Notes under the pieces: model-generated
The model's database searches: none
Told to the model about the DNA's origin: nothing
What the model saw: the letters and a program-made list of their open reading frames with translations, nothing else
Part shown: in pieces, positions 25,821-55,347 of the stretch
Numbering within the stretch: position 1 is the stretch's first letter
Layout: each line of letters begins with the position of its first letter
Assembly: GCA_021613535.1 (NCBI GenBank)
Contig: CP075496.1
Location: 14,818,001 to 14,882,000 of the forward strand
DNA from: Adineta vaga
Taxonomy: Eukaryota; Animalia; Rotifera
Length of the DNA stretch: 64,000 bases
Direction of reading: 5' to 3'
Translations under genes and position numbers: made by a program

Positions 25821-26804
25821 ATGGTCGATTCAGCCGCAGAACTACTTTTTCAAGTAACGAAAGTTATCTTACCTATGATTATTTTCTGTAGCGTAGTCGG
25901 CAATTCATTCAACATTGCTGTACTTACCCGACACACTTTGTTTAAGCATCCATGTTCTCATTATCTTCTCACCTGTTCCATCGACAATATATTCTACATG
26001 GGTGTCATTGTATTGTATCAATTTTGGATTCAAAACTATATAGTGGATCTTACTAAAAATTCTATTGTTTCGTGTAAACTTTTCAATTTCATCAGTACAT
26101 TAAGTATTACCGTATCTCCATATTTTCTTGTACTAGCTTCAATAGATCGATATTTTAATAGTTCAAATATTGCCTGGAAAAGAAGACTCAGTACTATACG
26201 TGTAGCTCGATGGATGATAGGCTTTGTCAGCGCATTCAATTTGTTATTGGCCTTAAATTTTCTGTCAGTAGACACTATATACAAACATGAAACGCTGGAA
26301 TGTATACTTTTACCTACTTCAATATACCAATTGGTGACTATTATGGTGATTAGTGTTAGTTATTCACTTGTTACACCTTGTTTGATGGTAATTTTTGGTA
26401 TTCTTATTATATGGAATGTGAGCCGAGCTCGTGTTTCTCCTATCGTAATTTCGCCGTATCGTCGCAATGGAATGCAAATGGCTCGGATGCTTCTAATGCA
26501 AATCGCCGCATACATTATTTGCAATTCAATTGGAACTATTCTTTATGTAATTTCATTTATCATACCATCGATAGTAACCACACTTGAGTATCAAATAGCA
26601 ACAAACGTCAGTTATCTTATGTACTATGTTTCTTATGCCACGCCATTTTTCTTACACATTCTTTCGGCTCAAGTGTATAGGAAGGAATTCATTAAGCTTA
26701 TGCGTAAAGCATTTCGATGCAGTGATATAATTCAAGTTCATCAAATAACAGTTCAACGAACTAATCCTACGGTTGATCAAGTGATTCGAGTTCCAAGAGA
26801 ATAA
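25821..26804 (+). CDS. Class A (rhodopsin-like) GPCR, intronless
   Basis: 327 aa with 7 hydrophobic segments, GN in TM1, Cys at the top of TM3, SIDRY, and a TM7/helix-8 stretch (PFFLHILSAQVYRKEF). Confidence 0.9.
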   Translation: MVDSAAELLFQVTKVILPMIIFCSVVGNSFNIAVLTRHTLFKHPCSHYLLTCSIDNIFYMGVIVLYQFWIQNYIVDLTKNSIVSCKLFNFISTLSITVSPYFLVLASIDRYFNSSNIAWKRRLSTIRVARWMIGFVSAFNLLLALNFLSVDTIYKHETLECILLPTSIYQLVTIMVISVSYSLVTPCLMVIFGILIIWNVSRARVSPIVISPYRRNGMQMARMLLMQIAAYIICNSIGTILYVISFIIPSIVTTLEYQIATNVSYLMYYVSYATPFFLHILSAQVYRKEFIKLMRKAFRCSDIIQVHQITVQRTNPTVDQVIRVPRE

Positions 26805-28392: not shown

Positions 28393-29473
28393 ATGGCTAG
28401 TGAAAATGATTTGATATCTTCACTCACTTATGCAACAATGCAAATTAACCGTCATGCAGCTACATTGTTGCTTTTATTTGGTACACTTGGTAATCTTCTT
28501 AATATTTGTGTTTTAAGTGAACATTCATTTCAAGAAAATTCATGTTCATTTTATCTTTCTTGGTCATCAATAACAAGTTTAATATTTATTTGGTCAGGAT
28601 TTCTAACACGAATTTTACAAGGGTAAGTTCTTCTAGTGAACTATTCATTTAATTTTTAATAGAAAAAGAAAACTTGTTTATTTTAGTTATAATATAAATT
28701 GGCCAAATCAAAATTCAATTGCATGTAAAACTCGTCAATTTTTTCTTAATGTTTCTTGGCCAATGGGTATTTGGTGTCTCGTTGGAGCAAATATTGATCG
28801 ATATTTATGTAGTCATCATTCTGTTACTTATCGTCAATTGAGTACAAATAAAATGGCAAAACGTTTTGTTTTCGGAATATTTATTTTCTTTTGTCTTTTA
28901 TTTATTGAAGTTATTTATTGTTTTGAAGGAAGTATTCCAAATGTTCCAGTTCTTTGCTATGGTCAAAATATTCCTTGTCGATTATTTAATGATTGGGCAG
29001 CTTTATTGTTTGATATTATTTTACCAAGTATTTGCTTAGCAATTTTCGGTACATTAACTATTCGAAATATTCAATCAACAGTTGTTCGTCCTATAATAAT
29101 CAATTCGGAAAATAGAAATAATAATCGATTAACAATGCGACATAATGATCGTAATCTTTCAAGAATGTTATTAATTCAAGTGAGTTTTATTCTTTCTAAA
29201 TAAAAGATTATTTTCCTTTTTCAGGTATTATTTGTTCTCATTTTGGATTTGCCATTTGGAATTTATCGTACATATGCAAGTTTAACATCAAATATTTCAA
29301 AAAGTTCCTACCGTGTAACTATTGAAAATTTTCTTTATTCTTTAATTGTACTTCTTATTTGTGTTACTCATTCAACTTCATTTTATTTATATACACTTAC
29401 TGGTTCATTATATCGTCGTGCACTTAAACATATTGGACATAGATTTTTTATTCGAATTCGATTAATGCATTAA
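28393..29473 (+). CDS. Class A GPCR, 3 exons
   Basis: Exons 28393-28622, 28687-29179 and 29225-29473. Motifs GTLGNLLN, NIDRYL, RMLLIQV and SFYLYTLTGSLYR. Confidence 0.88.
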
Positions 29474-32323: not shown

Positions 32324-35300
32324 TCACTGTTGTATGAGTGTCGCAGCTGCGATTGACTGAGCCAGTTCGCGTACGGACGAATGGCCAAAAAACATTTCGG
32401 CATCAATGTTAGGATAGATACGTTCACGAATAAGACACATCGCTTGGAGCGAGAGCAAACCCGGATTGATTGGTTGGCCATTGTTGAACGATGATGGAAG
32501 TTGTTCGATGAACGACATAAACGGAGCGAGTACGTCGAACTCGATGTCATTCGGCAACTCAAATATATGAGCAAAAATTGCACGTAGTTCACGTTCAACA
32601 GCACTAAGCTCTTCAGTGGCGGACGGACGAGGTACTTGCCAACCACCATCCGCAGGAAGACGTGCTCGATCGAGTCGACCGTTTTCATCTAACGGCCATT
32701 CAGATACAAGGAACCATACGGCGGGTACTTGGAATGTGCACATCATGTGTCGACAATAGGACACAACTTGGTTAAGATTAGTATCGGCGGGTGCCAACAA
32801 ATAGGCAGCAGTATTGCCAACACCCAGACAGCAATCGAGTGCTGTAGGACACGCGGCGATTATCGTCTCCATTATAAATTTGTCTTCAATAGTCTGCTTT
32901 TCACAACCCATGTAGACTAGCATCTCTTGCTCATTATACATTGCTCGATCGCCTGTCGCGTCGAACCGGTGCGACGAGTCGATCACATTCAAATCACCCA
33001 CTTGTCCGATCCATGTCGAATGACCATAATCATTGAGAATGGTGCATCCGCGTAACGGTCGTCCAACGGGCACAATCGTGGTCAAATCATTGTCGATAGT
33101 TTGGATTTCGTAGTAGGCGGTAAGACAACGTGAAGGTGGAGCATACAAATGAAAGAAGTGACATTGTCGTGCTGCTAGACGATATTGTATCTGTTGAATG
33201 GCACCCATTCGAAGCAATGGACTTCCTATACACTATATAGATAGCAAATGTCAAATGCAGTAGCGATACTCACCTGCCCCACTCAACCAGGCAAAGCAAT
33301 GTACGTTGCTATCGGCCAGATTGACTTGACACCATTTCAGAGTCATTGACGGAACAGTTAAAATGCATGTTATACCTTCATTATGCACATACTTAAATAG
33401 ATCCTCAATTTCACTGTCTAGATCGACGAGGATGACACGTGGTCGTCCTACATTTGGAAGCGCTATCGGTGAGTGAATCAAGATAACATCGTCATCAGTT
33501 AGAACCGACTGTTGTACTAAATATTCGATGATTGTTGTATCAGAAATAACCGGTGTTATTGATGAACACCCATCAACAATAGCTTGTTCATGTGGAAGAA
33601 TGAGATGTAAATTTGAAATCGAATTTTGTTCTTTGTTGAATATCGATTCCGTTGAGAAGAGTTGATTGATAAGACAGTCGAATCGTTCGACCATCGTTAC
33701 AATTGTGCATTGTCGAAATCGATCGACAGAACCTTCAAATATGGATACTATCGTATTATCAGTTGGATCGACGAAGAAACCAACACCAAGATCAATGGGG
33801 AACGGATCTCCGTTGTCTGCAGTCTCTTTCTTGACTAAGTGGCACAAATTCAAATCGATCGTTTGTTTAGCAAAATCATCCATATGTCGAATGACCATGA
33901 TAGTCTCAATAAAAGCCAATGGCTGTTGTGGCGGTAATCGATCACGGTGCAAGTAGACAATGTTAGCAAAATCATAATGAGAGTAAGGCAGAACATTGAG
34001 GAACGATTGGTGAACGTACTGCACTAGTTCAGTGAAGGATGTTGCTTTGGACAGTTGAAGACACAATGGTACAAGTTGGGCCACGAAACCAATAATAGAC
34101 TCGAATTCTGATCTGTGCCGATTGGCATGAATAGTACCGACGCAGACATTGTCCCATCTATCGGTCAATAGAGCGAGAAACAGAGAATAGCAGGCGAGCA
34201 TCAGCTGATGAAAGGTGAGTTGTTGCTCTTGTGCATAGACAGTCATACGACGTACCGTCTCGCTATCCACCATTTTACAATGCCTAAAGTTCATGCCTGT
34301 TCGTCGTGTGTGTACCGGTAGGCGAAAATCATAGGGCAAGCCAAGTGGCACATGACCAGGATAGTTGGCGAGAGTCTCTTTCCAAAACGCAACCGATGCC
34401 GATTCATCTTCGATTTCTGTGTGCACGACATAGTCAATATACTGAAATTTGTTTCTCATTGCTTCCATAACGCCAGTGCGTGATGATTGTTGTGCAATGG
34501 TCTCCAATTCAGTAACGAGGAAATTAAATGATACACCATCAAATACACCATGGTGGATATTAAGTATTATGACGTCACCGGGTCGTAAGACACTTTTGTC
34601 GCTGTCCGGTTGAAAGATTAAATGCAAACGAAAGATATGGCCATGCTCAAAATTCATGCTCGAATTGCTCACTTCTTCAAAAATTCGACGAGTCATATCA
34701 TCGGCATCGGTCGCTATGCTTAGCTGTTGAGTGTACATTTGGCGAACGTCCATCACTGGACGAATCGACTGACGCAAGGAGCGAGTGTAAGCGTCAAAAT
34801 GGAGTCTCGTGCGAAGTATGCCATGTCGTTCGACAAGCGCATCTACGATGGTGAGAAGATCATCGACGAGCAATTCGCCCGTGTCGACTTGATATACATC
34901 ATACATGTTGAAGACAACACGGGATTGTTTACGTGGTCGAGCATACATGACAGACTCGATGAGCAACGCGTCATGTTGGCCTGTTCCAGCTTTGGCTGAA
35001 ATGAAAACAAGATAAAATTGATCATTCTTTCTGATGGTCGGTACCCACCTTCGATGATGTTGAGTGGCTGCCATATGTGGTGAAAGTTCGTTATTGTTGT
35101 CTGGTATTGTGCATTGGCAATCAGCATCGCATGTTCTCGAATGGTACTTTTTGTGAAAAGAAGAGTGAGCGGAACCGTTTGCACGCTCAAGGCGAGACAT
35201 GACTGGTACCGATGATACAATGTCATGAGCGAGAGTGAAGTACCACCCAGGCGAAAGAAATTGGCTGTGATAGAAATCGATGACGGTTCGATTTTGAGAA

Positions 35301-38300
35301 TTTCGTGCCACAGTTGGACGATTTGTCTTTCGAGATCGTTGCTCGGTTTAATAATTACTTCATCGCAGGCCTGATTTTGTCTGAAATCCACTTTAGGCAA
35401 GACTTTGCGATTGATCTTGCCATTGGCATTGAGAGGAAACTTTTCGAGAAGAACAAAGGCCGCTGGGACCATGTGATCTGGTAGTTGAGCCTGACAATGT
35501 TCAAGTAGAATTTTTGACAGTGCATTTGATTTTGATTCGGATGTTTGAACGTATGCGACGATATGTACGTCGTCACATGCTACCACTACACAGCTAGAAG
35601 CGAGTGGCGAACCATCGAGAACACACTTTTCAATTTCACCCAATTCAATACGTTGACCTCGTAGTTTGATTTGAAAATCTCTCCGTCCAACGTAGTCAAA
35701 CTCACCCTGTGGATTGATTCGAACGAGATCACCAGTTCTGTAGTAAGTGTAACCATCGCTATGATGCAAGAGAACGATCTTCGTTAAATCATCTCGTCCC
35801 AAATAACCGGCAAAGACACCGACGCCGCCGACAAGTAATTCACCGGCTTGTCCAATAACTACTGGCTGTTGGAATTCGTCGACCACCAAGCAGCGATAGC
35901 CGGGTAGGGGTCGACCGATGGGAACGCTTTGTCTGTCGCTTGTGAGATCAACTCGATGGCAAATGCTGATCATTGTCGCTTCGGCCGGTCCATACAAATT
36001 CCAGATGGCACAGTTCGTCGAGACATGAAGCCTTAACTGTTGAAGAAGCTTGGCGGGCAAACTTTCTCCTAAAACAGAGCCAATAATCGATTCAGCTCGC
36101 AAGAAAATGGCTTTTGTATTTTAGTTCTACTTTAACACTTAGTCTTCTCATTAGCCTCCTTTCTACCTTTTGCTCACTGTCGTTTTTCAACTCTCCTGCA
36201 AACTTTCCTCTAGTAATTAGTTCTATTTTCCAGTAGTCATCTAGCGCATTGCGACTTTATATTTATGTGTATCTAATTTTCGATAAGCATCTATGACGAC
36301 TTCGGGTTCCTAACAGAGATCTTTAGTTCTGCATTCCAGTTCTTGTCATATGATTGTACTGTGAGATGATCACAAAACAAAGTTGCATGAAAGTCGCAAT
36401 AAGTTCGAGCAGTTTTTCTGCCCTGCCCGGTGCACACGAACGTCTAGATTAGTATTTTACTTTGTGCTCACTATCACGAGGCTGAACAAGAATTACTTTG
36501 CTACTCTGGATCGTTTCTAGCTTTCAATTATTCACTTACCACCGCTGCACAACGTATGCAGTTTGTCCAAACAAGGTATTCGATGTTCGACAAGGTAGTC
36601 GCACAATGTTCGAAAGTAAGTGGGTACACTTTGCATGTACGAGATTTGCTTTTCGTTTAATACTCTTGTCACGTAGTTGAGGTCGAGGTTGCCTTGCGGG
36701 CGAAGCATGACAACAGTCGCTCCGACAATCAACGTTCCGACAATATCTCGCATATGCATGTCGAACGAACATCGAGCCATTTGAATGACTGTATGTCTTC
36801 CATTGAGCGGTCCAACATTTGTCAACGCTTGAATGCAATTGATAAAACCACGATGGCGCAATTGTGCCTAAGAGATCAGATTGGAAAGGGCTGTAACAAC
36901 ATCTGCTTGTAAAACTAACGAGATGTCCGAGAATAACTTTTTATGCATATAAAAAGTTGAGTCATATGCCAGATGATTGAGAACTCGAAACTCTACTCAA
37001 CTACATTTCTCTCACGAGGGAACCATCTGAGGTGTCAAAAAGCTTTTCAGTCGGCCTTGTGATGGTTCGATAGGTCATGGCTAGGAGTGATATATTCTAA
37101 GTTAGTTCGTGCGCAAGTTGCAATCCAGCTGAGATATTGACTTTTTACTAGAATTCACCTATGGAACTCCATCTTCCTTACAGAATCAAAGTTTTGAATT
37201 TTGAGGTGAGACTTTGTCCATGTCAAGACCTCAGCCAGAGTAGTTCGTCCACGAAGTTTCAGAAGTTTCAGACTAGGCATTCCCGAGATACAATGTTTTC
37301 AGAATATCCGTGCATACAACAATACTTGTAAAAAACTGTGTTTATGCTAACAGACTCATCTCGGGAATGTCTAGTCCGAAACTTCTGAAACTTCGTGGAC
37401 GAACTACTCTGGCTGAGGTCTTGACATGGACAAAGTCTCACCTCAAAATTCAAAACTTTGATTCTGTAAGGAAGATGGAGTTCCATAGGTGAATTCTAGT
37501 AAAAAGTCAATATCTCAGCTGGATTGCAACTTGCGCACGAACTAACTTAGAATATATCACTCCTAGCCATGACCTATCGAACCATCACAAGGCCGACTGA
37601 AAAGCTTATTGACACCTCAGATGGTTCCCTCGTGAGATTTTTTGAAAGTTATCCTAAACATCTATTAACTAACCGCTTTTGGAACACCCGTAGAACCAGA
37701 GGTGAAAGAAATGTAAGCGATACTGTCACGGGTCACTTCGACTGAGGACAGTCGATGTACATCGCCGATTTCTATCAGATTGATGGTGTCAATGTTCAGT
37801 GTTGTAGTAATACCTTCGCATTTATCTTTCGTTCGAAAATGAACAAGGACAAGACCACTTCCGGTTTCCTTCACGAGTTTAAGTCGACGTGCGGGTGGAT
37901 CGTGAGCAGGCAGTGGACAATAGACAGCGCCAGCCATTTTGATAGCCATCAATCCAACAACCTTTTTTTTCAACAAATAGAAGTACATTTGATATTCAAC
38001 ACACTTACCATTTCAATGCTTCGTTCAACACATTGGCAGATGATCTCTCCTGGTTGAACATGTCTCGTGTCTATTAAGTGAAAAGCAAGCCGTTGAACTA
38101 AACAAAGCAGTTCACTATAGGTTGCCGACTGTTCGTCAAGTTCGATTGCCACCTTTTGCGGATGCATTTCAAACGAATGCAAAAATACATGATGAATGCA
38201 ATCAAATGATGAATCGTACGCTGTCTTATTCAATGCTGTCATGAGACGCAACTCATCTGGTAGAAGCAATGAGAAATTGTAGATCGATTGGGTCGGTGTT

Positions 38301-40025
38301 CGATTGATTGTTGATTGGTCCACGTTGAAGAGTTGTCGGAGTAGCACACAAAATCGATCGACCAATAATGACATGGTCAACGAGTTGAATAGGTCACGCA
38401 AACATTTGATCGTGCATGTAAACTCGTTCTTTTTCTTATCATATGCTAATTCAAGCGCAAAGTCAAAGACGGTGGCAGTAGACAATGAGCTCGTTGACAT
38501 TTGTTTCAATTGCGTTGTATCGTCGAGGTCGATGCTGATTGTATTGTTTTTCGTGATGAAAACGTTGAACAACATTCCCATGAAGGCGGCCGACGACTGT
38601 GGTACAGGATGACCAGCGACAATGTGTTGCAACGGAACGTGTGAGTGTTCGAGAATGGCTAGACATCGATGATGTACCTTATTCAGCAGTTGTTCGAACG
38701 ATGCGTACGGATCTACTTGTAATCGATATGGGAGTGTGGCGGCAAACACTCCGATTATGTTGCTTAATTCGGACCTGTATCGGTTTTCATGTGAGCAAGC
38801 AACACATAGATCACGTTCACTATTGCTCAGTTTGAATATGAAGGCATAGAAACAGGCGAGACCAAGTTGAAAAAATGTAACATTATGCGACGAAGCGTAT
38901 GCCACAAAAGAACGAGATAAATTTTCATCGAACACAGAGTGAACGCTTGTAACTGGAGGCGCGCGTTGTATTTTGCCCTCGATTCGATGATAAAAACGAT
39001 CGACTGGAAGAGACAACAACCGTTCAAAATCGTAGCCATCGAAAAATTGATGCCAAAATGTCTGAGATGATTGCATGTCTAGTTGTCGCTCATGAATGGC
39101 ATAGTCGATGTATTGTAGTGCGTTTTTATCTAGCGGAGAAAGATGATTCTGGTAACACAGACAAAGATCACCGAGAAAGAGATCAATTGATGCATTATCG
39201 AAAGCTAAACAATGGAAGTTAAAGATTATGGTATCGCCTGCACTCATCGTATCATCGTTGACGAAAGCACGTTGAATGATACGACAGTGAAGAACATGGC
39301 CTCGATCGAGATTGAACAGCGTCTCGTTGGTGACTGACTCGTTTAAAAGCGTATCAAACTCATAATCACTCGCAGCATGGCTTACTGTCATAGTGTAATG
39401 GTTTTCATATGAGAATGGTTCAATGCGCTGAGTAAGAGTGTCTGTCATAATATCGAGATGGAGTGATGTTCTAAGAACAGCATGTTTCCAAACGAGAGCA
39501 TCGAGTGCTCGACGAAGGCGTGCAATGGAGACTGAACCTTGCACTAATTGAAGCACAATCGGAACGTTGTCAACTGTTTCGTCATGCACAACCCCATAGT
39601 GATAGATTCGCTCTTGTGCCCAGGAAGCCTCGGCTAGAAAACACGACAAAACAAAATTAAACCCCCCTCATCGTCTCTCTATCCCTTTATTTACCTTGAC
39701 TCAAATTCAATGGCTTCCATAATTGTTGATCTTTGCCAATACGACAGTGCTCATTGAGAAGTTGTACATGGTCTTCGATCGTAGCATGCTGGAAAAAGCT
39801 CGCAATGCCCAGAATATGGCTGTTCAAATTAAATGTCTTTTGATATTGCTGATAGAGTTGTAACATGGGGAGTGAATGGCCACCCATCGAGTAGAAGGAA
39901 CAATCGACAGGTATTTCAGTGTACGATGGCAATTGAAGCGCTTGACACCAGAGATCATGTACGTATCGCCGATCGATCTCTTCCCCTGGAACAACGATCA
40001 AAGTTGGCAAAACGGTCATTGACAT
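32324..40025 (-). CDS. Non-ribosomal peptide synthetase, 7 exons, 2071 aa, domains T-C*-A-T-C-A*(degenerate)-T*
   Basis: Exons 40025-39695, 39633-38009, 37961-37674, 36867-36540, 36068-35049, 34995-33274 and 33225-32324 join in frame through GT-AG introns (6216 nt). PCP motifs GGHSL and GGTSL; C motifs ASWAQERI..FHCLAFDN, and IHHGVFDG; A motifs FTSGSTGVPKA, SFD, NLYGPAE, GELLVGG, YRTGDL, GRRDFQIKLRGQRIELGEIE and NGKINR. Confidence 0.93.
37010..37637. mobile_element. Foldback MITE in NRPS intron 3 (280-bp arms, 68-bp loop)
   Basis: 37010-37289 is the reverse complement of 37358-37637 with about 3 mismatches. Confidence 0.9.
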
Positions 40026-40310
40026 AGTGATACGATCTATTTTTTCCTTTGACAACGATTGGTAATGAATCTACTACGATGTAGTGAGGCGAGAATCTAC
40101 AAATAGAACAAACTATGGAATGTATGCAGTAGGGATTCGTGTAAGCCGGTGAAAATTCAAAATCTGTCGCTCTGCAATACGATGGATAACGTAGAAAGTA
40201 TTTGTTAACAAACAGTGTGTCACATGACGCAGAAAACTTGGTTAGAGTGTCTGCTTATGACCGTTCATATAAAACGGTTGCATAAGAATGATGGGAACAA
40301 AAGAAAGAAT

Positions 40311-41104
40311 ACAACGTAATCACTTTTGCAAAAGTCCTGAGACAAAATGTTCGTTAGTTTTTCGAGTACATGAAAGAGATTGGTGAGGAATAAAAGTGGT
40401 CAATAAGAAGCAGAATTCTATGCTCTTTCCAAATATGTGTGCAAAATTTTTGTCTGAATTAGGATTGTTTCACTGTGAATAAATGTTTAAAAGGGTCAAA
40501 ACGGATGTTTGTACATGCAAAATAGGAGTTCTTGTGCATTCCATAGTTTTTGCAGATCGTATTTTTGGACAACTTTGACTCAGCATTATTTTAGAGCGTT
40601 CCACTCTCTACAAAATGAAACACTATAATAAATTAGTGCTAGAAAAGACAAAACTCATGTTCATTTTCCTAAAAGTTATTTTTCACATGCATCGATATTT
40701 ATCAAACCAACAATTTTTCAAAAATTATCTTTTAAAGTGCAGCGGATTTTAAGTGTATGTCATGAAATATAAAAGAAAACGAGACATTACATTTCGTAGA
40801 GCAGACTTCGCCCTACAAAACAAGAATATTAAAGAAGCATTTCATATATTCATCTGATTAAACTTCAATCAAAACACAAAATGGATGACAACAAAATTCT
40901 GTACAAACATCAATTTTGATTCTTTCAAACATTTATTCACAGTGAAAAAATCCGAAGTCAGACAAAACTTCTGCACACATATTCGGAAAGAGCACATAAT
41001 TCTGCTTCTTACTGACCACTTTTACTTCTCACCAATCGCTCGCATGTCCCCGAAAAACGAACGAACATTTTGTCTCAGGACTTTTGCAAAAGTGGTTATG
41101 ATGT
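40311..41104. mobile_element. MITE with ~200-bp imperfect TIRs just upstream of the NRPS
   Basis: CACTTTTGCAAAAGTCCTGAGACAAAATGTTCGTT at 40321, with its reverse complement ending at 41094. Confidence 0.8.
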
Positions 41105-42612
41105 GAAACAAAATGGGCACAGTTTCTATTAGGACTATCAAAATAACACACTTCAGTGAATACGCTCACTCGATACGGAAAGAACAGAAGATCATGAGAC
41201 TGGTATGGAAGAGAGGAAAGTAATATAACTGGATGTAAGATAAAATATTTGAGGAAAAAAATTAATTTTTTCCTTTCTTATTCATGGTTGAGCAATTATT
41301 ATCTTCAACCATCTTCGTCTGGAGTAGTAACTCCTAATGCCGAGAATAACATGTTTTTTAGTTTTATTTTGATATAGGATCAGAGAGAGATTACACCCGT
41401 AAAAAAATTCGAATGGGCTATTCACGATATTTCTTCAGAAACAAAATCTGCGACAGAAGATCGATTAAGAATTATACTGATAAAGGATCAATTCCTGTAT
41501 GCAATAAAAAATATGAACTCTCGCATTCTACAAGTTGCAAAAACATTCAGAGTAGTTTTGAAAAACATGTCGAAATGTGTTGGGATTCATATCGAACACA
41601 CTTTCACTACAAAAGTCTGAAAATATCAAGAAACCAGTGTTTCAACGTTAAACTGAACTGGGACTACTCTAGCTACTAAGCAGTCTTTGGAATTTTAGAG
41701 CAAGTTTTCGAGATGTAATCCAAATTTCCATATCACGGTTTCGAGTCATTTTTTTCTCTCTGAATTGTCTTGTATGTATCGCGTTGATTAGTTGAGTTCT
41801 GATCATTTTTCGAAATATTAGAAAGTTACTAAAGTTTTCTGGGTATCCCCAATTACTAAATATTAGTGTTATTCAATATTATGGACTGCGTGAAGACATT
41901 ATTATCCACAAGGCTCTGAAAAAAGTGGTGCCTGCGTTTATTTGCATCAAAGTTCGCCATAATCAGTGCTGGGGAAGCGTTAATCATGTATTGAGAGTAG
42001 AGCCTCGTTCAGTAATTTAACAGATATCGAGTTAAGACAAGTAGGAGAAGAGACATGATTCAAATACGATCATGTTACAATCATCTGCAACGAATTATCT
42101 GTGCGTCGAATTTTCTTAGCACCAGTAATTCTTTCACTTTTTGCTTTGTTCACTGGTGAGTGAATCCGTGGTAAACGCACCACAGTTAGCAAAAGGTTTT
42201 TTTTGCGAATTTTCTTTGCTCAGTCGATGGCACCTCCTTAGAAAATAGATTCTACCGAAAAAAAGTTCAGACTAGATGTGAAAACGTGGTAGGGCCAGGC
42301 AAATGTCACGTTACAACTCATTTTGACATTTATGCTCACATTGAAACGGCTTTTGTAATTCTTCACATCACTAGTTTTGTACAGCATCTCATGCTGTTCA
42401 TTCTGGTTTTGGTGGGTGACAGTGGAATGATGGGTGGGGCATAGATGTGGTTGTTGGATGACGTGCGTGTGGGTGTGAGTAGTGTATTCACAGTTGAATG
42501 TGATGGACAGGTGCATGAACATCCAGTCCTTTAAGTTTGGGAAGAAATTCCGAAGAGAAAACAATTTTTTGTTTTTGGCAGTCGAGGATGAAGTGAGTCG
42601 AAACGATGAATG

Positions 42613-43149
42613 TTGCTTATATGTATAGCTCATACTGTAGGTATAAGTCCTAAAATGATTCGTCCCCACACTCTGTTGTTGTTGAGATATTGTATTTTCA
42701 AGATACATAAAAAAATATTATTGCCGTGTTTCTCCTCCGAGATATCGAAAAAATTCATTTTTTCATTTCGACTTGAAACTTTGTGTAAATGGAGGTCTCA
42801 ATGAAAACTGTTTATTGTGAAAATTTCAGCTTTTTCAAATGGTCCTAATCACAAATAATAGTACCAACACTATTCTCCGTAAGTGACATTATAGGTTCCA
42901 TAGCCATATCTTCGGATGGAAACAAACAATATATCTACGATTTTCAAAACAAACTACTATCATTGAGACCTTCATTTACATAGTTTCAAGTCGAAATGAA
43001 AAAATGAATTTTTTCGATGTCTCAGAATGGGACCACGGCAATCATATTTTTTCATATATCTTAAAAATACAATATCTCAACAATAACAGAGTTTGGGGAC
43101 GAATCATTTTAGAACTTATACCTACAGTATGAGCTATACCTAAAAGCAA
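42613..43149. mobile_element. MITE with ~200-bp imperfect TIRs
   Basis: GTATAGCTCATACTGTAGGTATAAGT...AAAATGATTCGTCCCCA is mirrored at 43085-43149. Confidence 0.8.
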
Positions 43150-43864
43150 AATCCGCGTTCAGATGAGAGGTGTCACCTCAGATGCTTCCCTCGTCAGTAA
43201 CAATGGATGATCTGATTATACTTTTTACTCCCGATGACAATCATTGCCCTGATAAGTTCGTTAGCAAACTATTATCTTAATAGTATTACACATACCTCTT
43301 TATATTATAAACGTATGGGTCACGTTGATGATTTTGGAAAGAAATAGCTCGACAATATTAAGTGTAGGGATGCTCTCAAATAGGCGAATGCGCGTTGTCT
43401 TAACTAATACGATTGAAACAGAACTGCATTGAGCATGAGTATTGTATAAATACGCAATATACACAACGTTTTGCTATGAAGCTAGTTGGTTATGCATGAT
43501 TTCCTCTACTCTCTACGACCATTAAAGCAAATACATTAGATGCAGTACGAAAGTATAATGGCGTTTTATCTTCGTCGAGCTATAATACAGACATGCAACA
43601 GAGACTTGCCCTTTTCGATAGTTGATGGCTGTCATACTAAAAAAATTAAATGGCAAAATAGGACAAAAAGCTCGCCCGCCCAGCCGTTTTAGGCTAAAAT
43701 ATGAAACTCACCTATCATATTTATCATCACTATAATAATACTAAATACGTAAAATAAAGGTCTTTAATAAACAGTATCTACTTTCTAAGGATGGCTGATC
43801 GTCAAAGAAATGATCTACGTTATTTATTTCTGTATTTCAAAAACTAATTGTTTTCTTGTATTCT

Positions 43865-44060
43865 CTTTTTGATGTACTCAAAAAGTGAGAACACTACTTT
43901 AATTGGTCCGTGTATCCGTCCGTGTACACGATAACTTTTAAAAGGAGAGTTAGATCGTGATAAAAAATTTTCCACAGTTCAGTCTCATCAATATCTCGGT
44001 TGAGTTCGAAGATGAGCTTGGTTGGACCAGCCATTGCAGAGTTATCGGGAAAATACTGAT
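43865..44060 (+). mobile_element. Possible HINE/DINE-1-like non-autonomous Helentron fragment
   Basis: GTCCGTGTATCCGTCCGTG microsatellite-like start followed by ATATCTCGGTTGAGTTCGAAGATGAG; recognised by resemblance only. Confidence 0.35.
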
Positions 44061-44574
44061 AAATTCCTCTTGTTGTACAGTGACTAGCATCTTGAACATA
44101 AGAACCTAGAAAGAGAGCGAAATTTGTTGGCCAAAGAAATGTGGTTCAGTTCATGAACCAGTTAATATAAGTCACGATCGACTACATAGTAACCTGCTCA
44201 ATTTACTTAGGTGTATCCAACAGTAATGTCGTCCCTTTGTTATTTCCTTATTGAATGGTCAAAACAAAATTCTTGTTTTATAGAAATATAGAGAAACTGA
44301 AACTGTATTTTTCTATACTCTTTCATCGTATTCAACTAAGTGTCATACGAACAAAATTCCGAGCAGAAATATCTTCGTGTGAAACTAACCATTGGGATTA
44401 TGTGGTATTTTCGTCCACTTCTATGCAAATTTCGCTCATCCTTTGCTTCTCCTTTTCTTTCCAACTGGTCCACCGCTTCTTATCAATCTCGTATAGATAC
44501 AGCTTATTCGTATACTATTGAGGAAGACAAAAGGACAAAAGTCGACTTCAACTTGAATAACTTATCCGTTTCTA

Positions 44575-45600
44575 ATGAATAAGGAAAACATTCGTTTTTA
44601 TATCAAAATGCGCACCGCGTTTGATATTCAACCAAGAGTGATTTATGAAGAGTCATATGCTGTTCGTGGTGATCGAATATCTTGTCATAGAGCAGCTGGA
44701 ATATGGTGTAAACGATTCCATGAAGACCAAGATGACCTCGAAGACGAAGCATGACCCGGCAGATCCGTTACCGAAACAACCTCTGAAAACATCGGACAAA
44801 TTCGTCTGATCATTGATGATGATCCTAAAGTCACAATTGAAAAAATACAAGACCAAACTGGTTTAAGCTACGGTACTACGAAGCGGATCATTATCGATCA
44901 TTTACAACTGATCAACGTCACGGCTCGTTACTTACCGAAATAACTCATTGGCTTCCAACGAAACGAACAAGTACCAATATGCAAAGAGAACTTAGCGCGA
45001 TTTAGAGATGGAATATGACGTTTATGCAATGTGATAACGATCGACGAATGGTCGTTCTATCACCGGCAGACTGGCCGCAAGTCATCAAATGCTGTTTGGA
45101 TGGCAAGAGGTGATTCTACATCCACAATCATTTGTCGCCATAAGTTTGCTCCGAAAACGTTATTATCCATCTTTTTTAGATCCATCGGTCCACTTATGAT
45201 TCTTCCTGTGAAACAACGGCAAACTATCGATCATTGATATTACATCGACAATTGCTTACCACTTCGTTTAGACGAAATTAGGCACCGACGACACCCATAT
45301 CGCACAAATCATGTCATTCTGCATCAAGACAACAACAAGCCGCATGTTCATGAGCGTGTGTCTAAGTACCTTCAATTGGAAGGTATTTACACAATACCCA
45401 GGCAGACAAATTGAGAAGAATTACGAGTAAAAACGTTTGAAAATGTGCGCTTTTCCCGAATTTATTTTCGTTAGAATTTTAACGCGTTTTTACTCGTAAT
45501 TCTTCTCAATTTGTCTGCCTGGGATAGTACATCCACCGAATTCTCTCGACTCCATACCATGCGATTTCTGGTTATTTGATCTAATTAAACGCAAATCGAT
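44575..45600 (+). pseudogene. Mariner (DD34D) transposase relic
   Basis: MNKENIRFYIKMRTA.., ITIDEWSFYH (D1), LHQDNNKPH (D2), HPPNSLDSIPCDFWLF (D3); stops and frameshifts. Confidence 0.85.
45397..45523. mobile_element. 127-bp MITE (CCCAG...CTGGG, 3-bp TSD ATA; CMC/EnSpm-like) inserted in the mariner relic
   Basis: ~39-bp perfect TIRs with ATA on both sides; removing it restores the frame IYTI-VHPPNS. Confidence 0.9.
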
Positions 45601-45760
45601 GTACAATCATTGCAACGGGTCCGCTACACTTTGCCGATAATCAGTTTGCCGACAGATACACTAAGCATGTTAAATCTCGTAGTTTCTAAATTCCAACACA
45701 ATTACGAAGTGAGCTAGTTTTCTGTTAGATAGAGTGTAAATGCATAGATAAACAAAGACA

Positions 45761-45821
45761 ATCTTGAGGGTGTGGGTTAAGAGTATAGCCCGACCCATAC
45801 CCGCACCCACACCCTCAAGAT
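45761..45821. repeat. Telomere-repeat-like mini hairpin
   Basis: ATCTTGAGGGTGTGGGT...ACCCGCACCCACACCCTCAAGAT. Confidence 0.85.
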
Positions 45822-46382
45822 GCTTACCTCGTAAACTAAAGAGACTTCATTCACAGTCGATTATTTACCAAAGTTCATTGTTGGCACAAAAAAATATACT
45901 CTTGTGATATTGTAGTATCAAAAGGCAGTGCTAATGATCTGCTATTCAAAATCAAATGAGCAAGCTGGTTGATCTCCGTTTCCATCTCGAAAACTATCTG
46001 AGTCCTTTCAGCTTACTGTAAAAAAATACTTTGACGACGTTCACATTTTTTAATAGTATAAGGTGCCCTAGTTCAAGACTTTTTCAAACAATCTCGTAGT
46101 ACGCAAAATATTCAGTTGAATCTTTAAAGTTTTCAATTCCGCGGGAAACGCTTTGTACAAAACGCGAATCAATATTTACTGATCGCTCTCTAACGAGTCA
46201 TGAGGCGCAGAGGTAATGTTTTTTATTGAATAATAAAGACATATTAGTGTATCATGGAGTCCTACAAAAAACGGCTTATTTCATCGACGTTGTATACTAC
46301 GAAATAGTGAAAATCAAAAGTACCTTCCGCTTCTGATTTTCATTTTAGTTCGATTGCAGAAGCCATTTTTCTCAATAAAGTT

Positions 46383-48255
46383 TCAGCTTTTCACAATCGA
46401 AAATTCGGGCGTTTTCAGAAGCTCACGACCAATGTCTAATACTTTTTCAAGAAACAAATCGAGATCGGCCCATTTAGTTCGATGATTCATAATACACATT
46501 CGCATTACAAATGTATCACTATTGATCACATATGGAGAGACGAAACCTATTCCACGTCCTGCAATGATAAGCATTAGTGCTGTGTTTAATTTATTCAATG
46601 TATCTAAATCGATACCATCCAAACGATATCGAAAACAAACAATGTTGAGTGAGCCCGTTGCAAGTACTTCGAGTTCGGTATGGTGTTGTTGAATTAATTC
46701 AATGAAATATTGTATTTGATCAACGTTTTGCTCCATAATTTGACCCAATTTTTCTATTCCATACGCTTTGAGTGTCATCCAAACTTTGAGCGATTTCATA
46801 CTTCTCGACAGTTCTAATGTGTAATCGCTGAATACAATTTCTTCTTCAGGTGATGTTACTTTATCTTCTGTCCGTCCCATATAAGATGCGGGTGGTTGAG
46901 CGAATGTTGATCGGTGCATTGCACCATCCCGCACGAGAATACAACCGCATTCGTACGGGACAAAGAGCCATTTATGTAAATCAAATGCAATTGAATCCGC
47001 ACGTTCGAGACCAGCGAATAGAGGCCGAAGACGTGTTGAGCATCGAGCAACTGCTCCAATCGCACCGTCGACGTGGAACCACATGTCATTAGGATTGTGA
47101 GCGCACAAGTCAGCAAGACCTTGGAGATCATCGATGGCGCCTGTGCCGACCGTTCCCGCAGAACCAACCACAAAGCCACATGACTTTGGGTCAATTGTTG
47201 CTACTAAAGCCTAAATACAGTTGATAATGGCAAAATTCAAGAACAACCGTCCTCTAATCCATTACCTGCAGATCGATTTGTTGTTTGTCATTCGTTGGAA
47301 TAACGACCATGTTCTCTTGCTCGATGCCTAAGAGCTGAGCTGCTCGTATAAGGCAAGTGTGCGCTTCTGATGAGTAATATATTTTCATAAGTCGGCCGTG
47401 AAACTTTTTCTTCGCCACTGCCATTGCTATTATTGTAGCTACCGACGTACCACTTACCAGTGCACCAGAACAAGTGTCATCATTTGGAAAACCCATTAAT
47501 AATTTGAGCCAAGACAAGATTTGACTTTCTACGTAGGTGCTCGCTTGATGACCGCCCGCCGAATTTGTGTTCATAGTCGCTGTGATCAGCTCGGCCAGAG
47601 CACCAATCAGTGAGCCACTTCCTATGGCAAAGCCCCAAAACCGTGGGTGAATGTTACCCGCTGGATAAGGAAGAATTGTCGCCCGAACTTGTTCATACAC
47701 TTGCCAAAGTGATTGTCCCTTTAATGGAAGATCAAATTGAGACAGGGCTAGTATGGCTTCGGGTGGTATCAGACGACAAGTTGGTCGGAGGCGAAGATCG
47801 CGTAAGTAGTCGAGCATGTCGTCCATTATTTGATGTCCTAATAATCTTGCATCCTTCCAGTCGAGAGGATCAAGGGAGATCGCTTCAGGTTTGTTCTCAT
47901 CGTCAGAAGTCGAGAAACATGGAAAATCGATGGAAAATGACCAGATCTTTTTACGATTTTGACTACCAACATATATTGGAAAGGATATTTCAAGAAGCTT
48001 ATCATCGACTACACGAATACCACTGACTGGCGTTGCACTCTTCAGCATATTGATCAGCAGCTCAGCTAGTTCATCAGCTGTCTCACAGAGACGATGAGTA
48101 AGTGTTGCACATTGATCATCGTTCAATGAAATGGAATTGATCTTCATTTGATTTCGATGAAGTTCTATTGTTACACAACTGCTTGGATCATGCACAATTT
48201 GAATAGAATAGTCATGACTAAGTTGCCAGACGCTCTTATCGAAGGGCGACGCCAT
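46383..48255 (-). CDS. Group II PLP-dependent (aromatic) L-amino-acid decarboxylase of bacterial type, with ~125-aa N-terminal extension; 2 exons, 605 aa
   Basis: Exons 48255-47266 and 47210-46383 join in frame. Motifs SLDPLDW, GNIHPRFWG, SSEAH, GSAGTVGTGAIDDL, WFHVDGAIG, SIAFDLHKW (PLP Lys), ELSRSMKSLKVW, LNIVCFRY and RMCIMNHRT. Confidence 0.93.
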
Positions 48256-48413
48256 GAAACTGCTGCGTGTTCACTCCAGGAAAGACCTTGCTTGAACTAG
48301 AATACTCATGTTTTTTTACTATATACTTTACCTCTTGTTTTCCTCTGAACGCTATTTTCATTCTATATCTCTTATTATGTTTTTTTTCCGGACGAGAAAG
48401 AGAGTATGATCTA

Positions 48414-50697: not shown

Positions 50698-50767
50698 TTG
50701 GTGAGTGTAGGTGTAGATGAGGATATAATGTACAACTCAAACCCATCTCCCACATCACCCACTCTCA
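50698..50767. repeat. Telomere-repeat-like mini hairpin (degenerate)
   Basis: TTGGTGAGTGTAGGTGTAG...CCCATCTCCCACATCACCCACTCTCA. Confidence 0.5.
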
Positions 50768-51613
50768 GCCGTAATTCTGAAATGGTTTCGTACAAGTAGT
50801 ACGTTTTCCATGGATTCACTCATTTCTCGAAAAAAAGATTTGAACTTACTAGCGCGCTCAAATATAATTAGTTTGAAAGGTACCAAAAATGCCTTGCGGC
50901 CGTCTAAAATGTTTTGTTTGTCTTTTACTTCGCGCCTAAAGCAACTTAAAAAAAATTTCCCACCTTTAAGATCAGCGGGTAGTGTGCAGAAAAAGGAGTT
51001 TTCCCTAACCCACATAAAAGGTTCAGTCGATTTTAATGTTCGTTTTTTGGGACTTTTGGCACATTTGAAAGCTTTTAGTGTTCTACTGAAGCTTTTGTGT
51101 GGGTTCAGGAAACCTCCTTTTTTTCAGAGTAGGTATAAAGAATTAAACTTCTGGAAGTAACCTTTCAGGATGATTAATAAGTTCACTTATTAGTTTACAT
51201 CGATAATCATCAATCCATTCGCATTTGTAATCGGTTGAGATGTGATTTCCACCAGTGATGGCATTTAATGGTACATTCCATGTGTTCATGAATATTTGTT
51301 CTATCACCACCAAAACGTCGGCATATATCGTGATTTGAGTTTCGACAATTTTTCTTACTGTGACCAGGATGATTGAATCTTCTACAGATAAGAACTTTTG
51401 CAGTAGGAAGAAATTTTAGCATCTAGTTCTTCTTTTGATATCATCATTGGTGATGGTACGATGTATCCATATCAAGATGATAGTATTTTGAGATGGAAGA
51501 TGGATAAAGATCTTAGATCTAGTTTAATGCTCATCAGTTCTTTTGGATATAATCAATTCATTAGTTAATTTTGAACCTTGTTTTGGATGACAGGTAATTT
51601 TAAAAGGTGTAAA

Positions 51614-54600
51614 CGGCTTGTCCAGAGTAACGCACTCACGTTTTTGACAACTTTCAAACTGATTTTCTTTTCAGTAGCTAAGTGTGGGGGCTTGAAATTT
51701 GAACTGTGTGTATATATCATAGAGTAGTTTAGTTTATGTGCAACTCACATAAATGGGCTTCATTGTTAATTTTTTTTAATCAAAATACATGTCGGTAACG
51801 CAATCACAAAAAAAGTCTATGTTGATGTGACCACTATGAGAAATTCTTAAAATTCTTCTAATTGCTGCATCAATAACATATTGAATGTGCTGTAATTTAC
51901 TGAAGATAGTTTAAGTTCTCTATCGAAAAAAAATAGTTCTGAAATTTATTAAGCTTCTCAGAAATGGTAGCTTAAATATCATCGTAACGCACTCACCATT
52001 TTGGTAACGCACTCACATTCCATTCTCAACTTCTTTCTATCGTCATACAAATGACCTTTTCTTTATAGGAAAAACGCGTAATATCACTTATTTTGCTTTA
52101 TTTTCAAAATGTTTAAGTTTCACTATGTCATATGAAGTAACCAGCAACACGAGTTTTACATGAAAAAATACAATACATTATAACAGAAAGTTCAACAAAA
52201 AAATACAATTATATAGCTTAACACAAGTTCTTTTACTACTGTATATCTAAAAGAAAACTGTCCATTTCGTGGTCGAATAGTCATATAATCGACATTCGAT
52301 CACATCTGTTTGTACAACAATAACACTATGTAACTTTTGAGTATCCTTAACAGATACAGTATTTTCAAAGAAATGCTTCAATTGTTGTACTGATAAATCA
52401 ATATCTTGTTGAGTAATTTCGTCGATGATGATCACTTTGGTCTTCAACTTTGCAATATTAACGAAATCAGTAGCATTTTCACATCTTTCTTTCTTAGCTA
52501 AAATTTGTTGCCACACAAGTCGTTTAATTGTACCACCTAAACCGTCAACTACTCCTTTCCCATGACTAGTAGCAAAAAAATGCCACGAAAAACGTAAATT
52601 ATAATTATCTGACATACTTGTCAAATTTCTAAATAAATATCTTTGTTTGAATTGACTACTTGCCCCGTCGCTGAAAAATGAAATTTCTTCTAATTGTGGT
52701 AATTGTTCTTTCAATTTTTTAATAATATAATTAATGCAGCAGCTAACAAAATATTTATCATGGTTAACATTATTTGAACATAATGTAAAGGAAAAATTAA
52801 TTGATCCACACCAAGCATATGCAGTAAAAATAGAGATTGTATTAGAACTCCAATGAGCTGACTGAATTTCATCTTGTTCTTTTAAATTAAAATTTTCACT
52901 AAAATCGACCTGTACCACGACTTTTTTCTCATCGGTTGTTAATTTTGACTGTTCAAAAAAAGCACTTTGTTGTCTTTTTACGTAAACGTGTAATAAAAAA
53001 GATTTCACTTTTGAAGATAATAATTCAACACATTGTTCAACAGTTCCTTGTTGTTCTTCTTTTTTTGCATAACCATTGATATGTTTCCATTGATACCATT
53101 TCATAAAAGCACTCGAATTAATAATATTACTCTTAACATGTAAATCAAAATAGTTTTCGCAAGAAGAACAATTGGACGTCATACATTCATAGTTAGAATC
53201 ATCACAAACAAGTGCTGATATGAATGAATATATATTTGAGCAAGATGATTCATTGATATGTTTAGATAAGCTGTTTAGCAATAAATTAATATTTTCATGG
53301 TACATACATACACATATACGATGTGCCATGGAAGATTTTACTAAAACATATTCAGGTCGTATATCAGCAAAAGTAGTTCGAGCAACAGAATCACCTTAAA
53401 ATGGACTAAATTATCATTAAAATATATGAAAATAAATATTTACCAGGATATTCAGCAATAAATAACTCAAATGCTTCTCGAATACTATACAATAAAATTC
53501 GTTTCTGATAAACAACTTTATTTCCATTTTCTTTCACAGCAACTGTATCACGTTTACCGGGCATTTGATGTGATATATCATCACGACAGTAAAATGAAAT
53601 AATATTATTCTGAACATGAGTTGAAATTTTTTTAGTAAAACGTTCATGACTATCACGAGGTAAAAGACCAATTGATTGAGCAAGTGAACGAATAACAATT
53701 TTCTTTTTACCAACGTCATGTGGAAGAGCTTTTGTCACCTTTTTCATTGCTTTACTAATTGAAATTTTCGATACGGTAGAATTCCTAAACATAAAATACT
53801 TTTTTTCTCAAATATGATCAAGATAAAACGGAACATACTGTGGCTTGATTCGCTTTCGATCACGATATTTTTTTTGTTCTTTGGAATGTTTTTCATCAAA
53901 TTTTTGTTTTTCTTCTTTGGTCAAATTATGACGAATATTCTTCATACGGGCAGCATTTTTAACCTTCATTTCTTGATGTAGTCCTTTGTTCTTCAGGTTT
54001 TCACGATAACGTTTTTGTTTTTGAGCAGCTGTCAAAGCCATTGTACTATTTGTTAACACAAAAAATATATTAATATAGTTTATACTAGTAAATAATTATT
54101 TCGTTTCTTATAAAATCTGAAATAAAGGACACTAGATAAATGATAATTGCGTGAGTGCGTTACCATTTTTTTCTTCATTTGGTTTAGATAAACCATATCA
54201 AATAGGTTTCTCAGGTACCCCTTTCAAAGTTAGAGGAGCTTTATAAATTTCGCTTAAAATAATGAAGCTGTTTGTTTGCTGGAAAAACTACAAACCCTTT
54301 TTGGTAACGCACTCACCCGAGAATTTATCAAGTTTTTAGTACTTTCATTTTTTTTCTTTCACAAATACTTTACTAGGTATTATATATACTGAGGGATGGT
54401 CCAAGTCTTGAACATCGAAAATATATAACACACTTTAATCTATAGCTTTTCGTAGATTATTTTTGCTACATTTTTTGTATTGAGATAAATATGACTAAAT
54501 ACGTTAGAGAAAGGTGTCGCTAATGTACGGCCATTTATTTTTTGGTTTTTGATACAAAGACATAGAGTGAAATACATTTTCGTATACAGAAAAATGTGCT

Positions 54601-54681
54601 CTACAAAATAGTATAAAATATTTCACAAAGTTTTCGACTTCTACTTTAATCATATGAGAGAGCCGTTAGGCGGACAAGCCG
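51614..54681 (-). mobile_element. Full-length Sola2-type DNA transposon
   Basis: TIR CGGCTTGTCC...GGACAAGCCG, 4-bp TSD TAAA (51610-51613 and 54682-54685), and six GTAACGCA(C/A)TCAC subterminal repeats. Confidence 0.88.
52247..54041 (-). CDS. Sola2-type DDD transposase, 3 exons, apparently intact
   Basis: MALTAAQKQKRYR..; introns near 53840-53785 and 53443-53396 join in frame. Motifs CVCMYHEN, VDFSENF..QDEIQSAHW, FSDGASSQFK and FFATSHGKGVVDGLGGTIKR. Confidence 0.85.
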
Positions 54682-55347
54682 TAAAGTGATATTCATTTGC
54701 ATAGTTTAGTGCATGTTTGGAAATTTTAATTGAATTAGCATAACTATTATTTTTCATTAGAAAGTTGATTATAGTTAGTGTTATTATGAATTGAACTAGC
54801 TAATATTCTCAAAAGTGGTAAAACTTCTCGATAATCGTTATCATTGCTATCATTACTATATTCGCCACTTCTTGACTTATGAGAACGAGGTATCTACTAT
54901 TGGCAATGAATATGTTTATTAACTTCATTGTTTGATCCAAATCGTTGTACTTCACTTGTTCCCGTTCGTTTTATTGAGGCTGAAATATGACTTTGTTGCT
55001 GCATATTGAATTGATCAATTCTTGTTTGAATCTAATCAACTTTGCACAGCCATCTTTCACACTACTTTTCATGTTAACATAACTATCATAAGACATAATT
55101 AGTGATTAGTTTATTATAAATAAATAAATAAACAATATAAATTGTTCTTACCGATCTTCCGTAAGTTATAACTATACAGGCCAAAAGAACACCAGCAAGA
55201 GAATTACGTCTATATTGTAGCTATGAAAAGGAACGAATGTTGGAAAATTAGTTTTTTCAACTTGATCATATTGAAATATTTTCATTAAAAACTTTCTTTC
55301 CAAATCATTAGTTCAATGTTAATTTTTTAATCTACTCAAGAGATTAA

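Follow-up and report, generated by a model that had tools for sequence, protein, structure and literature searches.

About 370 kb from the end of chromosome 4 of the bdelloid rotifer Adineta vaga, a repeat-rich subtelomeric block holds two intact genes of foreign ancestry: a nonribosomal peptide synthetase (NRPS) at 32324–40025 and a pyridoxal phosphate (PLP)-dependent decarboxylase at 46383–48255, both on the minus strand and separated by 6.36 kb. Coordinates refer to the window, by which we mean the whole 64,000-nucleotide stretch analysed here (contig 4, positions 14,818,001–14,882,000, of a 100.8-Mb genome in six contigs). The NRPS has the architecture T0–C1*–A1–T1–C2–A*–T*, where T stands for carrier, C for condensation and A for adenylation domains and an asterisk marks a degenerate domain; it is built of two tandem T–C–A units plus a T domain, and one of the units alone is catalytically complete. 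The gene is under purifying selection, its degenerate parts included. As a tentative explanation of the locus as a whole, we propose that C2 releases the product onto a free amine, with the decarboxylase as a candidate source.

To our knowledge, bdelloid rotifers are the sole animal group with dozens of foreign NRPS and polyketide synthase (PKS) genes, and we know of no product identified for any of these. The present locus is tractable – it offers one active module, one competent C domain, no release domain and a candidate amine-producing enzyme nearby – so that the predicted product is small and could be tested with a few recombinant proteins. If the two genes are coupled, animals would be able to assemble a biosynthetic cluster out of genes acquired separately, and this one would encode the first amine-capped nonribosomal product of an animal, an aminoacyl-amine for defence or signalling. 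If they are not, the NRPS would still be a clear-cut case, in an animal, of degenerate domains (C1*, A* and T*) under selection, which bear on how pared-down synthetases work.

The NRPS itself is not new, having been catalogued as the intact region4.2 (Chrom_4 14832988..14874043, estimated length 2066 aa) by Nowell et al. (2024, Nat Commun 15:5787, Supplementary Data 9); the coordinates of the pieces listed there (C_LCL, PCP, C_LCL and PCP) match exons 1, 2, 5 and 6 of the gene described below. This inventory entry is uncharacterised – it comes without an exon model, an analysis of domain states, a selection test or the decarboxylase – and the details of the domain architecture given here are new. 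The decarboxylase is unmentioned in that paper and its supplements, which hold no usable expression entry for it. In the NCBI protein collection, the A. vaga protein I4U23_021838 matches the C2 exon at 100% identity.

Domain states of the synthetase

The initial annotation of this stretch had described an intact seven-exon NRPS and an intact two-exon decarboxylase on the same strand, about 6.4 kb apart, and open frames, GT..AG introns and Pfam matches bear this out. The NRPS exons, separated by six in-frame GT..AG introns whose donor and acceptor sites are good, add up to 6216 nt, or 2071 codons, with zero internal stops; the joined coding sequence served only for this stop count, all database searches having been run exon by exon. 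Along the minus-strand frames, Pfam recognises PP-binding first, then Condensation and AMP-binding, the latter split over four successive stretches of the profile, and after these AMP-binding_C, a second PP-binding and a second Condensation. An orthologue, used for comparison below, lies on the metagenome scaffold L001 (sample ERZ12298643), which is collinear with window positions 41375–32242 at 86–87% nucleotide identity.

Exon 1 (40025–39695) carries the start ATG and the N-terminal carrier domain T0, recognised by PF00550 (23.6 bits) and by alignment with the orthologue. Both T0 (GGHSL, or GGDSL in the orthologue) and the second carrier T1 (GGTSL, or GGVSL) have canonical phosphopantetheine GGxS sites. 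Exon 2 (39633–38009) encodes C1* (PF00668, 133.9 bits) and the beginning of the first adenylation domain, with the region of core motif A1. At the HHxxxDG site of C1 the window reads HCLAFDN and the orthologue NYSTFDN, so that neither has the catalytic second His; in an alignment with the C domains of teixobactin synthetase (Txo2/Txo1), MHHIVSDG stands opposite FHCLAFDN (FNYSTFDN in the orthologue), and this site is the least conserved stretch within C1. The catalytic degeneration of C1 had escaped the initial annotation.

The adenylation domain A1 continues through exon 3 (37961–37674; motifs A2–A3 with the P-loop SGSTGVPKA, PF00501 profile positions 60–180) and exon 4 (36867–36540; motif A4 and most specificity-pocket residues, in FDMHMRD ... 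SVPTY ... TLCSGG, profile positions 183–295) into exon 5 (36068–35049), which encodes motifs A5–A10 followed by T1 and matches PF00501, PF13193 and PF00550 as well as NCBIfam TIGR01733 (162 bits). Its full set of core motifs is canonical, including, besides the P-loop, NLYGPAE, YRTGDL, GRRDFQIKLRGQRIELGEIE and NGKINRK, and its pocket residues are identical between the window gene and the orthologue. The tentative pocket code, D-M-R-Q-C-G-L-M-I-K (read by motif anchoring, with GrsA numbering), matches no specificity code known to us and does not allow a substrate to be assigned. T1 itself, with LGGTSL, lies at about 35089–35349 (PF00550).

The second unit begins with C2, which fills the first part of exon 6 (33608–34995 of 33274–34995; PF00668, 121.5 bits) and is the sole condensation domain of the NRPS with an intact HHxxxDG site (HHGVFDG; HHGAFDG in the orthologue). 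Among 1.84 billion cluster representatives, only its own cluster contains relatives of C2 above 30% identity, any orthologues above 50% being hidden inside that cluster.

Behind C2, about 310 residues form A*, whose N-terminal remnant (33274–33607, the last part of exon 6) was recognised by comparison with A1 and has no Pfam match, and whose C-terminal remnant (32624–33225, the first part of exon 7, which spans 33225–32324) was recognised by alignment with ten A. vaga A–T regions and by own-genome matches. Motifs A2–A4, P-loop included, are gone; A5 reads HLYAPPS, A8 has lost seven residues and Arg stands in place of the A10 Lys (NGRLDR). The initial annotation was right that C2 with its HHGVFDG is followed by a crippled A domain; it had overlooked the degenerate carrier T* that comes after A*, in the last part of exon 7 (32324–32623) just before the stop codon. 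In T*, GGTSL has become GLLSL, HLISF or LLSF in the orthologous sequences, with the Ser kept and a 13-residue insertion before the motif. The match of T* to PF00550 stays below the cut-off (E 0.01 and 0.003 in two orthologues), and hhalign of two-sequence profiles of T* and T0/T1 gave a probability of 10%; its homology is settled by the full-length alignment with the T domains of the ten other A. vaga NRPS regions.

The protein thus ends in A*–T*. No Pfam or NCBIfam match to a thioesterase (TE), reductase (R) or other release domain was found in any NRPS exon, in agreement with the annotation on the first two, and no further NRPS exon was found in the flanks.

Conservation of the synthetase and its degenerate domains

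Against the L001 orthologue, at a dS of 0.27, the NRPS exons show no stop and not a single gap event in 6216 nt, with a dN/dS of 0.31, whereas the small introns and intron 4 together accumulated six gap events in 671 aligned nucleotides, at 83% identity. All six introns are GT..AG in both sequences, every splice site being kept. The gene is therefore not decaying, and the constraint extends to its degenerate end: dN/dS is 0.23 in the N-terminal and 0.28 in the C-terminal remnant of A*, the lowest values among the parts compared, 0.35 in T* and 0.53 in C2, so that A* and T* are as constrained as the remainder of the protein. Four out of four orthologous sequences are open and retain A*, T*, the Lys-to-Arg change at A10 and the Ser of T*; among them, the last exons from sample ERZ12298644 and from the Logan assembly ERR10755945 are open and keep HLYAPPS, the Arg and the Ser.

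These data leave little room for the view that the NRPS is a decaying remnant, that is, a piece cut from a larger synthetase which has stayed open by luck and makes no product. Degeneration of three of the seven domains (C1*, A* and T*) would fit such a remnant, as would the lack of NRPS words in most RNA-type runs (see below) and the position of region4.2 outside the three-domain expression set of Nowell et al. (2024). The clean exons beside gapped introns, a dN/dS that is lowest precisely in the degenerate A*, and conserved splice sites in a gene open in all four copies nonetheless make it a strongly disfavoured and, in our judgement, very improbable reading.

The intron positions record something of the history of the gene. 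Introns 1 and 5 occupy identical positions in the T-to-C linker, and introns 4 and 6 share a point in the A domain after SGG/GAG, which means that the two T–C–A units were duplicated after the introns had been gained. Exon-sized open reading frames (ORFs) of about 345 and of 500–580 residues recur among the NRPS matches of the genome, which suggests an exon plan common to the bdelloid NRPS family.

Several observations concern the surroundings of the coding parts. Collinearity with L001 ends about 80 bp past the NRPS stop (at 32242) and 1.35 kb upstream of its start (at 41375); the NRPS is conserved, its two flanks replaced. Intron 3 measures 806 nt in the window (36868–37673) and 1031 nt in L001 (4306–5336) and is mostly unalignable; an inverted match between L001 4363–4437 and window 36936–37012 suggests that different repeats were inserted. 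Intron 4, of 471 nt, has kept its length (470 nt in L001). Missing exon-sized matches suggest that the NRPS orthologue is absent from A. ricciae, A. steineri and Rotaria, the word-index search used for this seeing only proteins of similar length.

Release of the product

Since only A1–T1–C2 is canonical and neither a TE nor an R domain is present, it is reasonable to expect C2 to release the product onto a nucleophile in solution, which we consider slightly more likely than not. In the scheme we propose, A1 would adenylate one alpha-amino acid and load it onto T1, and C2 would pass the acyl group from T1 to a nucleophile in solution, a primary amine being the likeliest candidate, so that an aminoacyl-amide could leave the enzyme without a TE or R domain. 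T0–C1* and the A*–T* tail would have been kept as non-catalytic or scaffolding parts, and the co-oriented decarboxylase next door would be the leading candidate for the source of the amine.

Release by C2 onto a free amine had also been the suggestion of the initial annotation; it stands as reasonable, with a precedent closer than those the annotation had invoked. In the glidonin synthetase GdnB of Schlegelella brevitalea, the terminal module 13 (C13–A*–T13–TE) uses C13 to condense free putrescine, and the non-C domains of this end module are needed structurally, to stabilise the protein (PMC10587159). Common to both systems is a terminal C domain with an intact HHxxxDG site, behind which come a partial A domain devoid of specificity residues and a T domain. 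They differ in that glidonin has a TE, whereas the window NRPS lacks such a didomain; in that the window A* keeps part of the core, the A5–A8 region, and has lost A2–A4; in the T motif, which is degenerate in the window NRPS; and in the upstream line, which is a single module here, in an animal host. Sequence kinship between the two was seen only at the level of generic NRPS homology.

The chief competitor to amine release within the protein itself is T*, whose Ser is retained, so that an acceptor role is possible and counts against our scheme. T* could be loaded in trans by A1 or by a separate adenylating enzyme (as perhaps could T0), in which case C2 would build a dipeptidyl-T* to be released by hydrolysis, by diketopiperazine formation or by a trans-acting enzyme. 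The Ser is invariant in the four orthologues, outside the motif the domain aligns well with functional bdelloid T domains, selection on it is purifying (dN/dS 0.35) and T0 is canonical. Degenerate A domains also occur in fungal siderophore synthetases. In the kutzneride pathway, moreover, the dead A* of KtzH is served by a stand-alone A domain (PMC10587159). Set against this are the lack of any release domain for a T*-bound product, the change of the GGxS turn to GLLS/HLIS with a 13-residue insertion ahead of it, the sub-threshold PP-binding score and the state of C1, which, being devoid of its catalytic His, could not let T0 feed the line by ordinary condensation. On balance, we regard a working T* as unlikely and favour the reading in which C2 releases the product onto an amine in solution.

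Related enzymes known from animals are Drosophila Ebony and the schistosome NRPS, single-module beta-alanyl-amine synthases that couple one activated amino acid with a biogenic amine. In Ebony, the amine is chosen by a domain dedicated to this task and not by a condensation domain (PMC10531068). The window NRPS has two C domains and bacterial-type organisation.

The decarboxylase and its relation to the synthetase

The decarboxylase, a group II PLP enzyme of 605 codons, is open and comprises two exons, which score 115.2 and 37.4 bits against PF00282 (cut-off 27). Exon 1 (47265–48255, minus strand), delimited by PF00282, homologues and spliced contigs, encodes an N-terminal extension of about 115 residues and then the first half of the fold; a 55-nt GT..AG intron (47210–47264) is removed in contigs of the sequencing runs X3 and X8; exon 2 (46383–47209), with a PF00282 score of 115 bits and matches in the PDB, encodes HVDGAIG, the PLP-lysine motif FDLHKW and the C-terminal domain up to the stop. 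Compared with its orthologue on scaffold L002, the gene has a dN/dS of 0.45 and no stop; it is under purifying selection.

The best PDB match of exon 2 is 4OBU (E 2e-31), which we take to be the tryptophan decarboxylase of Ruminococcus gnavus; other solved relatives are 2QMA (diaminobutyrate decarboxylase), 5O5C (a decarboxylase of the desferrioxamine pathway) and plant tyrosine/DOPA decarboxylases. The window enzyme shares the fold and the PLP-lysine motif with all of them but has, in addition, a bdelloid-specific N-terminal extension for which no relative was recognised. No NCBIfam equivalog was reached (best scores 95–98 bits, against cut-offs of 606–900), which leaves aromatic amines and diamines equally open as products. 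An aromatic amine of the tryptamine, tyramine or phenethylamine type, as the initial annotation had proposed, is thus no better supported than a diamine, the substrate not being readable from the sequence.

The N-terminal extension (window 47881–48255, minus strand; LNDxQC..LTHRLCET, about 115 residues) is common to bdelloid long-form decarboxylases, among them the homologues P0004, P0025, P0041 and P0045, and absent from prokaryotic relatives. It has no Pfam match, and its Atlas scores, at 0.76, are at noise level.

Altogether, the genome holds seven copies of this decarboxylase, the window gene and six paralogues, of which the nearest, on contig 6, is 53% identical. In a tree of exon 1, the bdelloid long-form family is set apart from prokaryotic relatives (SH-aLRT 100). 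Within it, the window decarboxylase and three metagenome sequences form a clade of their own (99), which lies outside the clade of the A. vaga contig-6 copy, A. steineri and Rotaria. In Rotaria sp. Silwood1 (locus L006), a decarboxylase paralogue and a GNAT acetyltransferase (PF00583) lie 1.5 kb apart in divergent orientation (7899–8519 and 10001–11514), possibly an amine-plus-N-acetylation pair.

Both genes are richer in GC (0.41–0.455) than the region to their left (0.28–0.33), in line with the annotation. Together with their introns and the spacer they make up a single GC-rich block (0.36–0.46) in surroundings of 0.28–0.33. At third codon positions (GC3), the NRPS reaches 0.41–0.48 and the decarboxylase 0.34–0.39, neighbouring host-type ORFs 0.12–0.29; GC3 of the contig-6 paralogue is just 0.19, as against 0.34–0.39 in the window copy.

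Expression data were available as contigs rather than counts and support only joint presence in one RNA data set. Contigs of run X3 cover the decarboxylase exons only, in spliced form, which identifies the run as RNA, and 0.26 of the sampled NRPS words are present there too. Run X8 also contains the spliced decarboxylase, at low depth, and runs X6 and X12 contain neither gene. The decarboxylase is thus transcribed and spliced, and we infer that the NRPS is transcribed as well. The X3 (2018) and X8 (2024) contigs come from independent studies and show the same differences of about 1.3% from the reference over the decarboxylase (46398–48277), which points to the other allele or another laboratory line having been sampled.

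Whether the two genes work together has to be weighed against the view that they are neighbours by chance, each working independently: the NRPS would draw its nucleophile from general metabolism, in the way glidonin synthetase obtains putrescine, or release its product in some other way, and the decarboxylase would be one more copy of a multi-copy family that landed in a subtelomere rich in foreign genes. We hold this to be possible, if short of likely. It does not readily account for the decarboxylase being the nearest intact neighbour of the NRPS and on the same strand (some 6.4 kb upstream), for an NRPS end module of the type that needs a free amine, for the common GC-rich block, which is not seen in the paralogue, for the joint occurrence of both genes in run X3 or for their common narrow lineage distribution, close orthologues of both (80–85% identity) having been found in the same handful of A. 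vaga-like samples only. In its favour are the 6.4-kb spacer filled with repeats and the fact that NRPS clusters and foreign genes in general concentrate in subtelomeres (PMC11258130), where this locus also lies.

A series of further results likewise weighs against a functional link or lends it no support. Run X8 has the decarboxylase transcript and no NRPS words, and nine runs guessed to be RNA contain next to none. Sample ERZ12298643 carries both orthologues on separate, non-overlapping short scaffolds (L001 for the NRPS, L002 for the decarboxylase), and the collinearity of L001 with the window is lost 1.35 kb upstream of the NRPS start, within what is the spacer here. C or T domains of NRPSs were found within ±10 kb of none of the six A. 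vaga paralogues, at none of three loci from other bdelloid genomes (A. steineri and Rotaria), on none of seven bdelloid metagenome contigs and at none of 72 loci of prokaryotic relatives, two of which have an adenylate-forming enzyme only. The two genes belong to separate, separately expanded bdelloid families and hence were not co-transferred. Finally, with seven decarboxylase copies and about 40 NRPS clusters, all enriched in subtelomeres, one chance adjacency would not be surprising; by a rough estimate its probability ranges from low to about even, according to how strictly subtelomeric the two families are.

A synteny test in other genomes was set aside: the loci of A. steineri (L004 and L005) and Rotaria (L006) lack an NRPS, their flanks show no synteny with the window, and since they belong to a different paralogue clade in the tree, they speak neither for nor against linkage. 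At the contig-6 paralogue of A. vaga, too, the flanks are not syntenic with the window. The remaining orthologue contigs measure 1–4 kb, and scanning metagenomes for the decarboxylase yielded a single contig with an orthologue, L019, of only 1 kb.

The initial annotation had cast the decarboxylase as amine supplier to the NRPS. What ties the two genes together is that they are adjacent and co-oriented, lie in one GC-rich block and have the same narrow distribution across lineages; nothing further was found, and these ties are circumstantial. That the decarboxylase supplies the nucleophile for C2 is accordingly a suggestion we make with reserve. As the families are separate, any cluster would have formed inside the animal; a two-gene pathway might then have arisen there from separately acquired genes, a divergent paralogue of a decarboxylase gained long ago being recruited beside a pared-down NRPS whose C–A*–T* end captures the amine, a scenario that we consider doubtful, if conceivable.

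Such a division of labour has a bacterial counterpart in the bacillamide pathway of Bacillus, in which the amine at the end of the product comes from a group II PLP aromatic amino-acid decarboxylase, whose gene lies next to that of the NRPS BmdB, and an oxidase also takes part (PMC8795117, PMC3639450). The feature shared with the window is decarboxylase–NRPS adjacency only. The module sets differ, and, unlike in the bacillamide pathway, no oxidase and no heterocyclisation (Cy) domain was found in the scanned window ORFs. One A1 exon has BmdB as its best PDB match (E 4e-6), a weak and generic similarity.

The spacer between the genes (40056–46382) contains no recognisable intact gene, as judged by own-genome DNA search and by ORFs without a convincing Pfam match. 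The repeats detected by that search are foldback elements at 40311–41104 and 42610–43152 and an element of about 200 bp at 43860–44062 with more than 35 genomic copies; in addition, a frameshifted transposase-like relic lies at about 44557–45411. The annotation of the spacer as gene-free and repetitive therefore holds, whereas the mariner identity it gave to the relic is an impression by eye, for which Pfam returned nothing convincing. No NRPS relics were detected in the spacer or flanks by tblastn at E <= 10.

To the left of the GC-rich block, two ORFs of rhodopsin-type G protein-coupled receptors (GPCRs; 25821–26804, GC3 0.29, and 28763–29203, GC3 0.12) have host composition. The right flank (50700–58800) is a transposon graveyard, in which piggyBac-like transposase fragments (55753–56043 and 57513–57845) and a reverse-transcriptase-like fragment (57256–57516) can be made out by eye, alongside an ORF of 360 residues (52247–53329) without a Pfam match. 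Elsewhere in the genome, on contig 1, a decarboxylase of the Orn/Arg type (PF02784; 16881715–16882479) lies about 11 kb from an NRPS cluster at 16.84–16.87 Mb, and this second NRPS–decarboxylase neighbourhood may reflect a pattern or a second coincidence.

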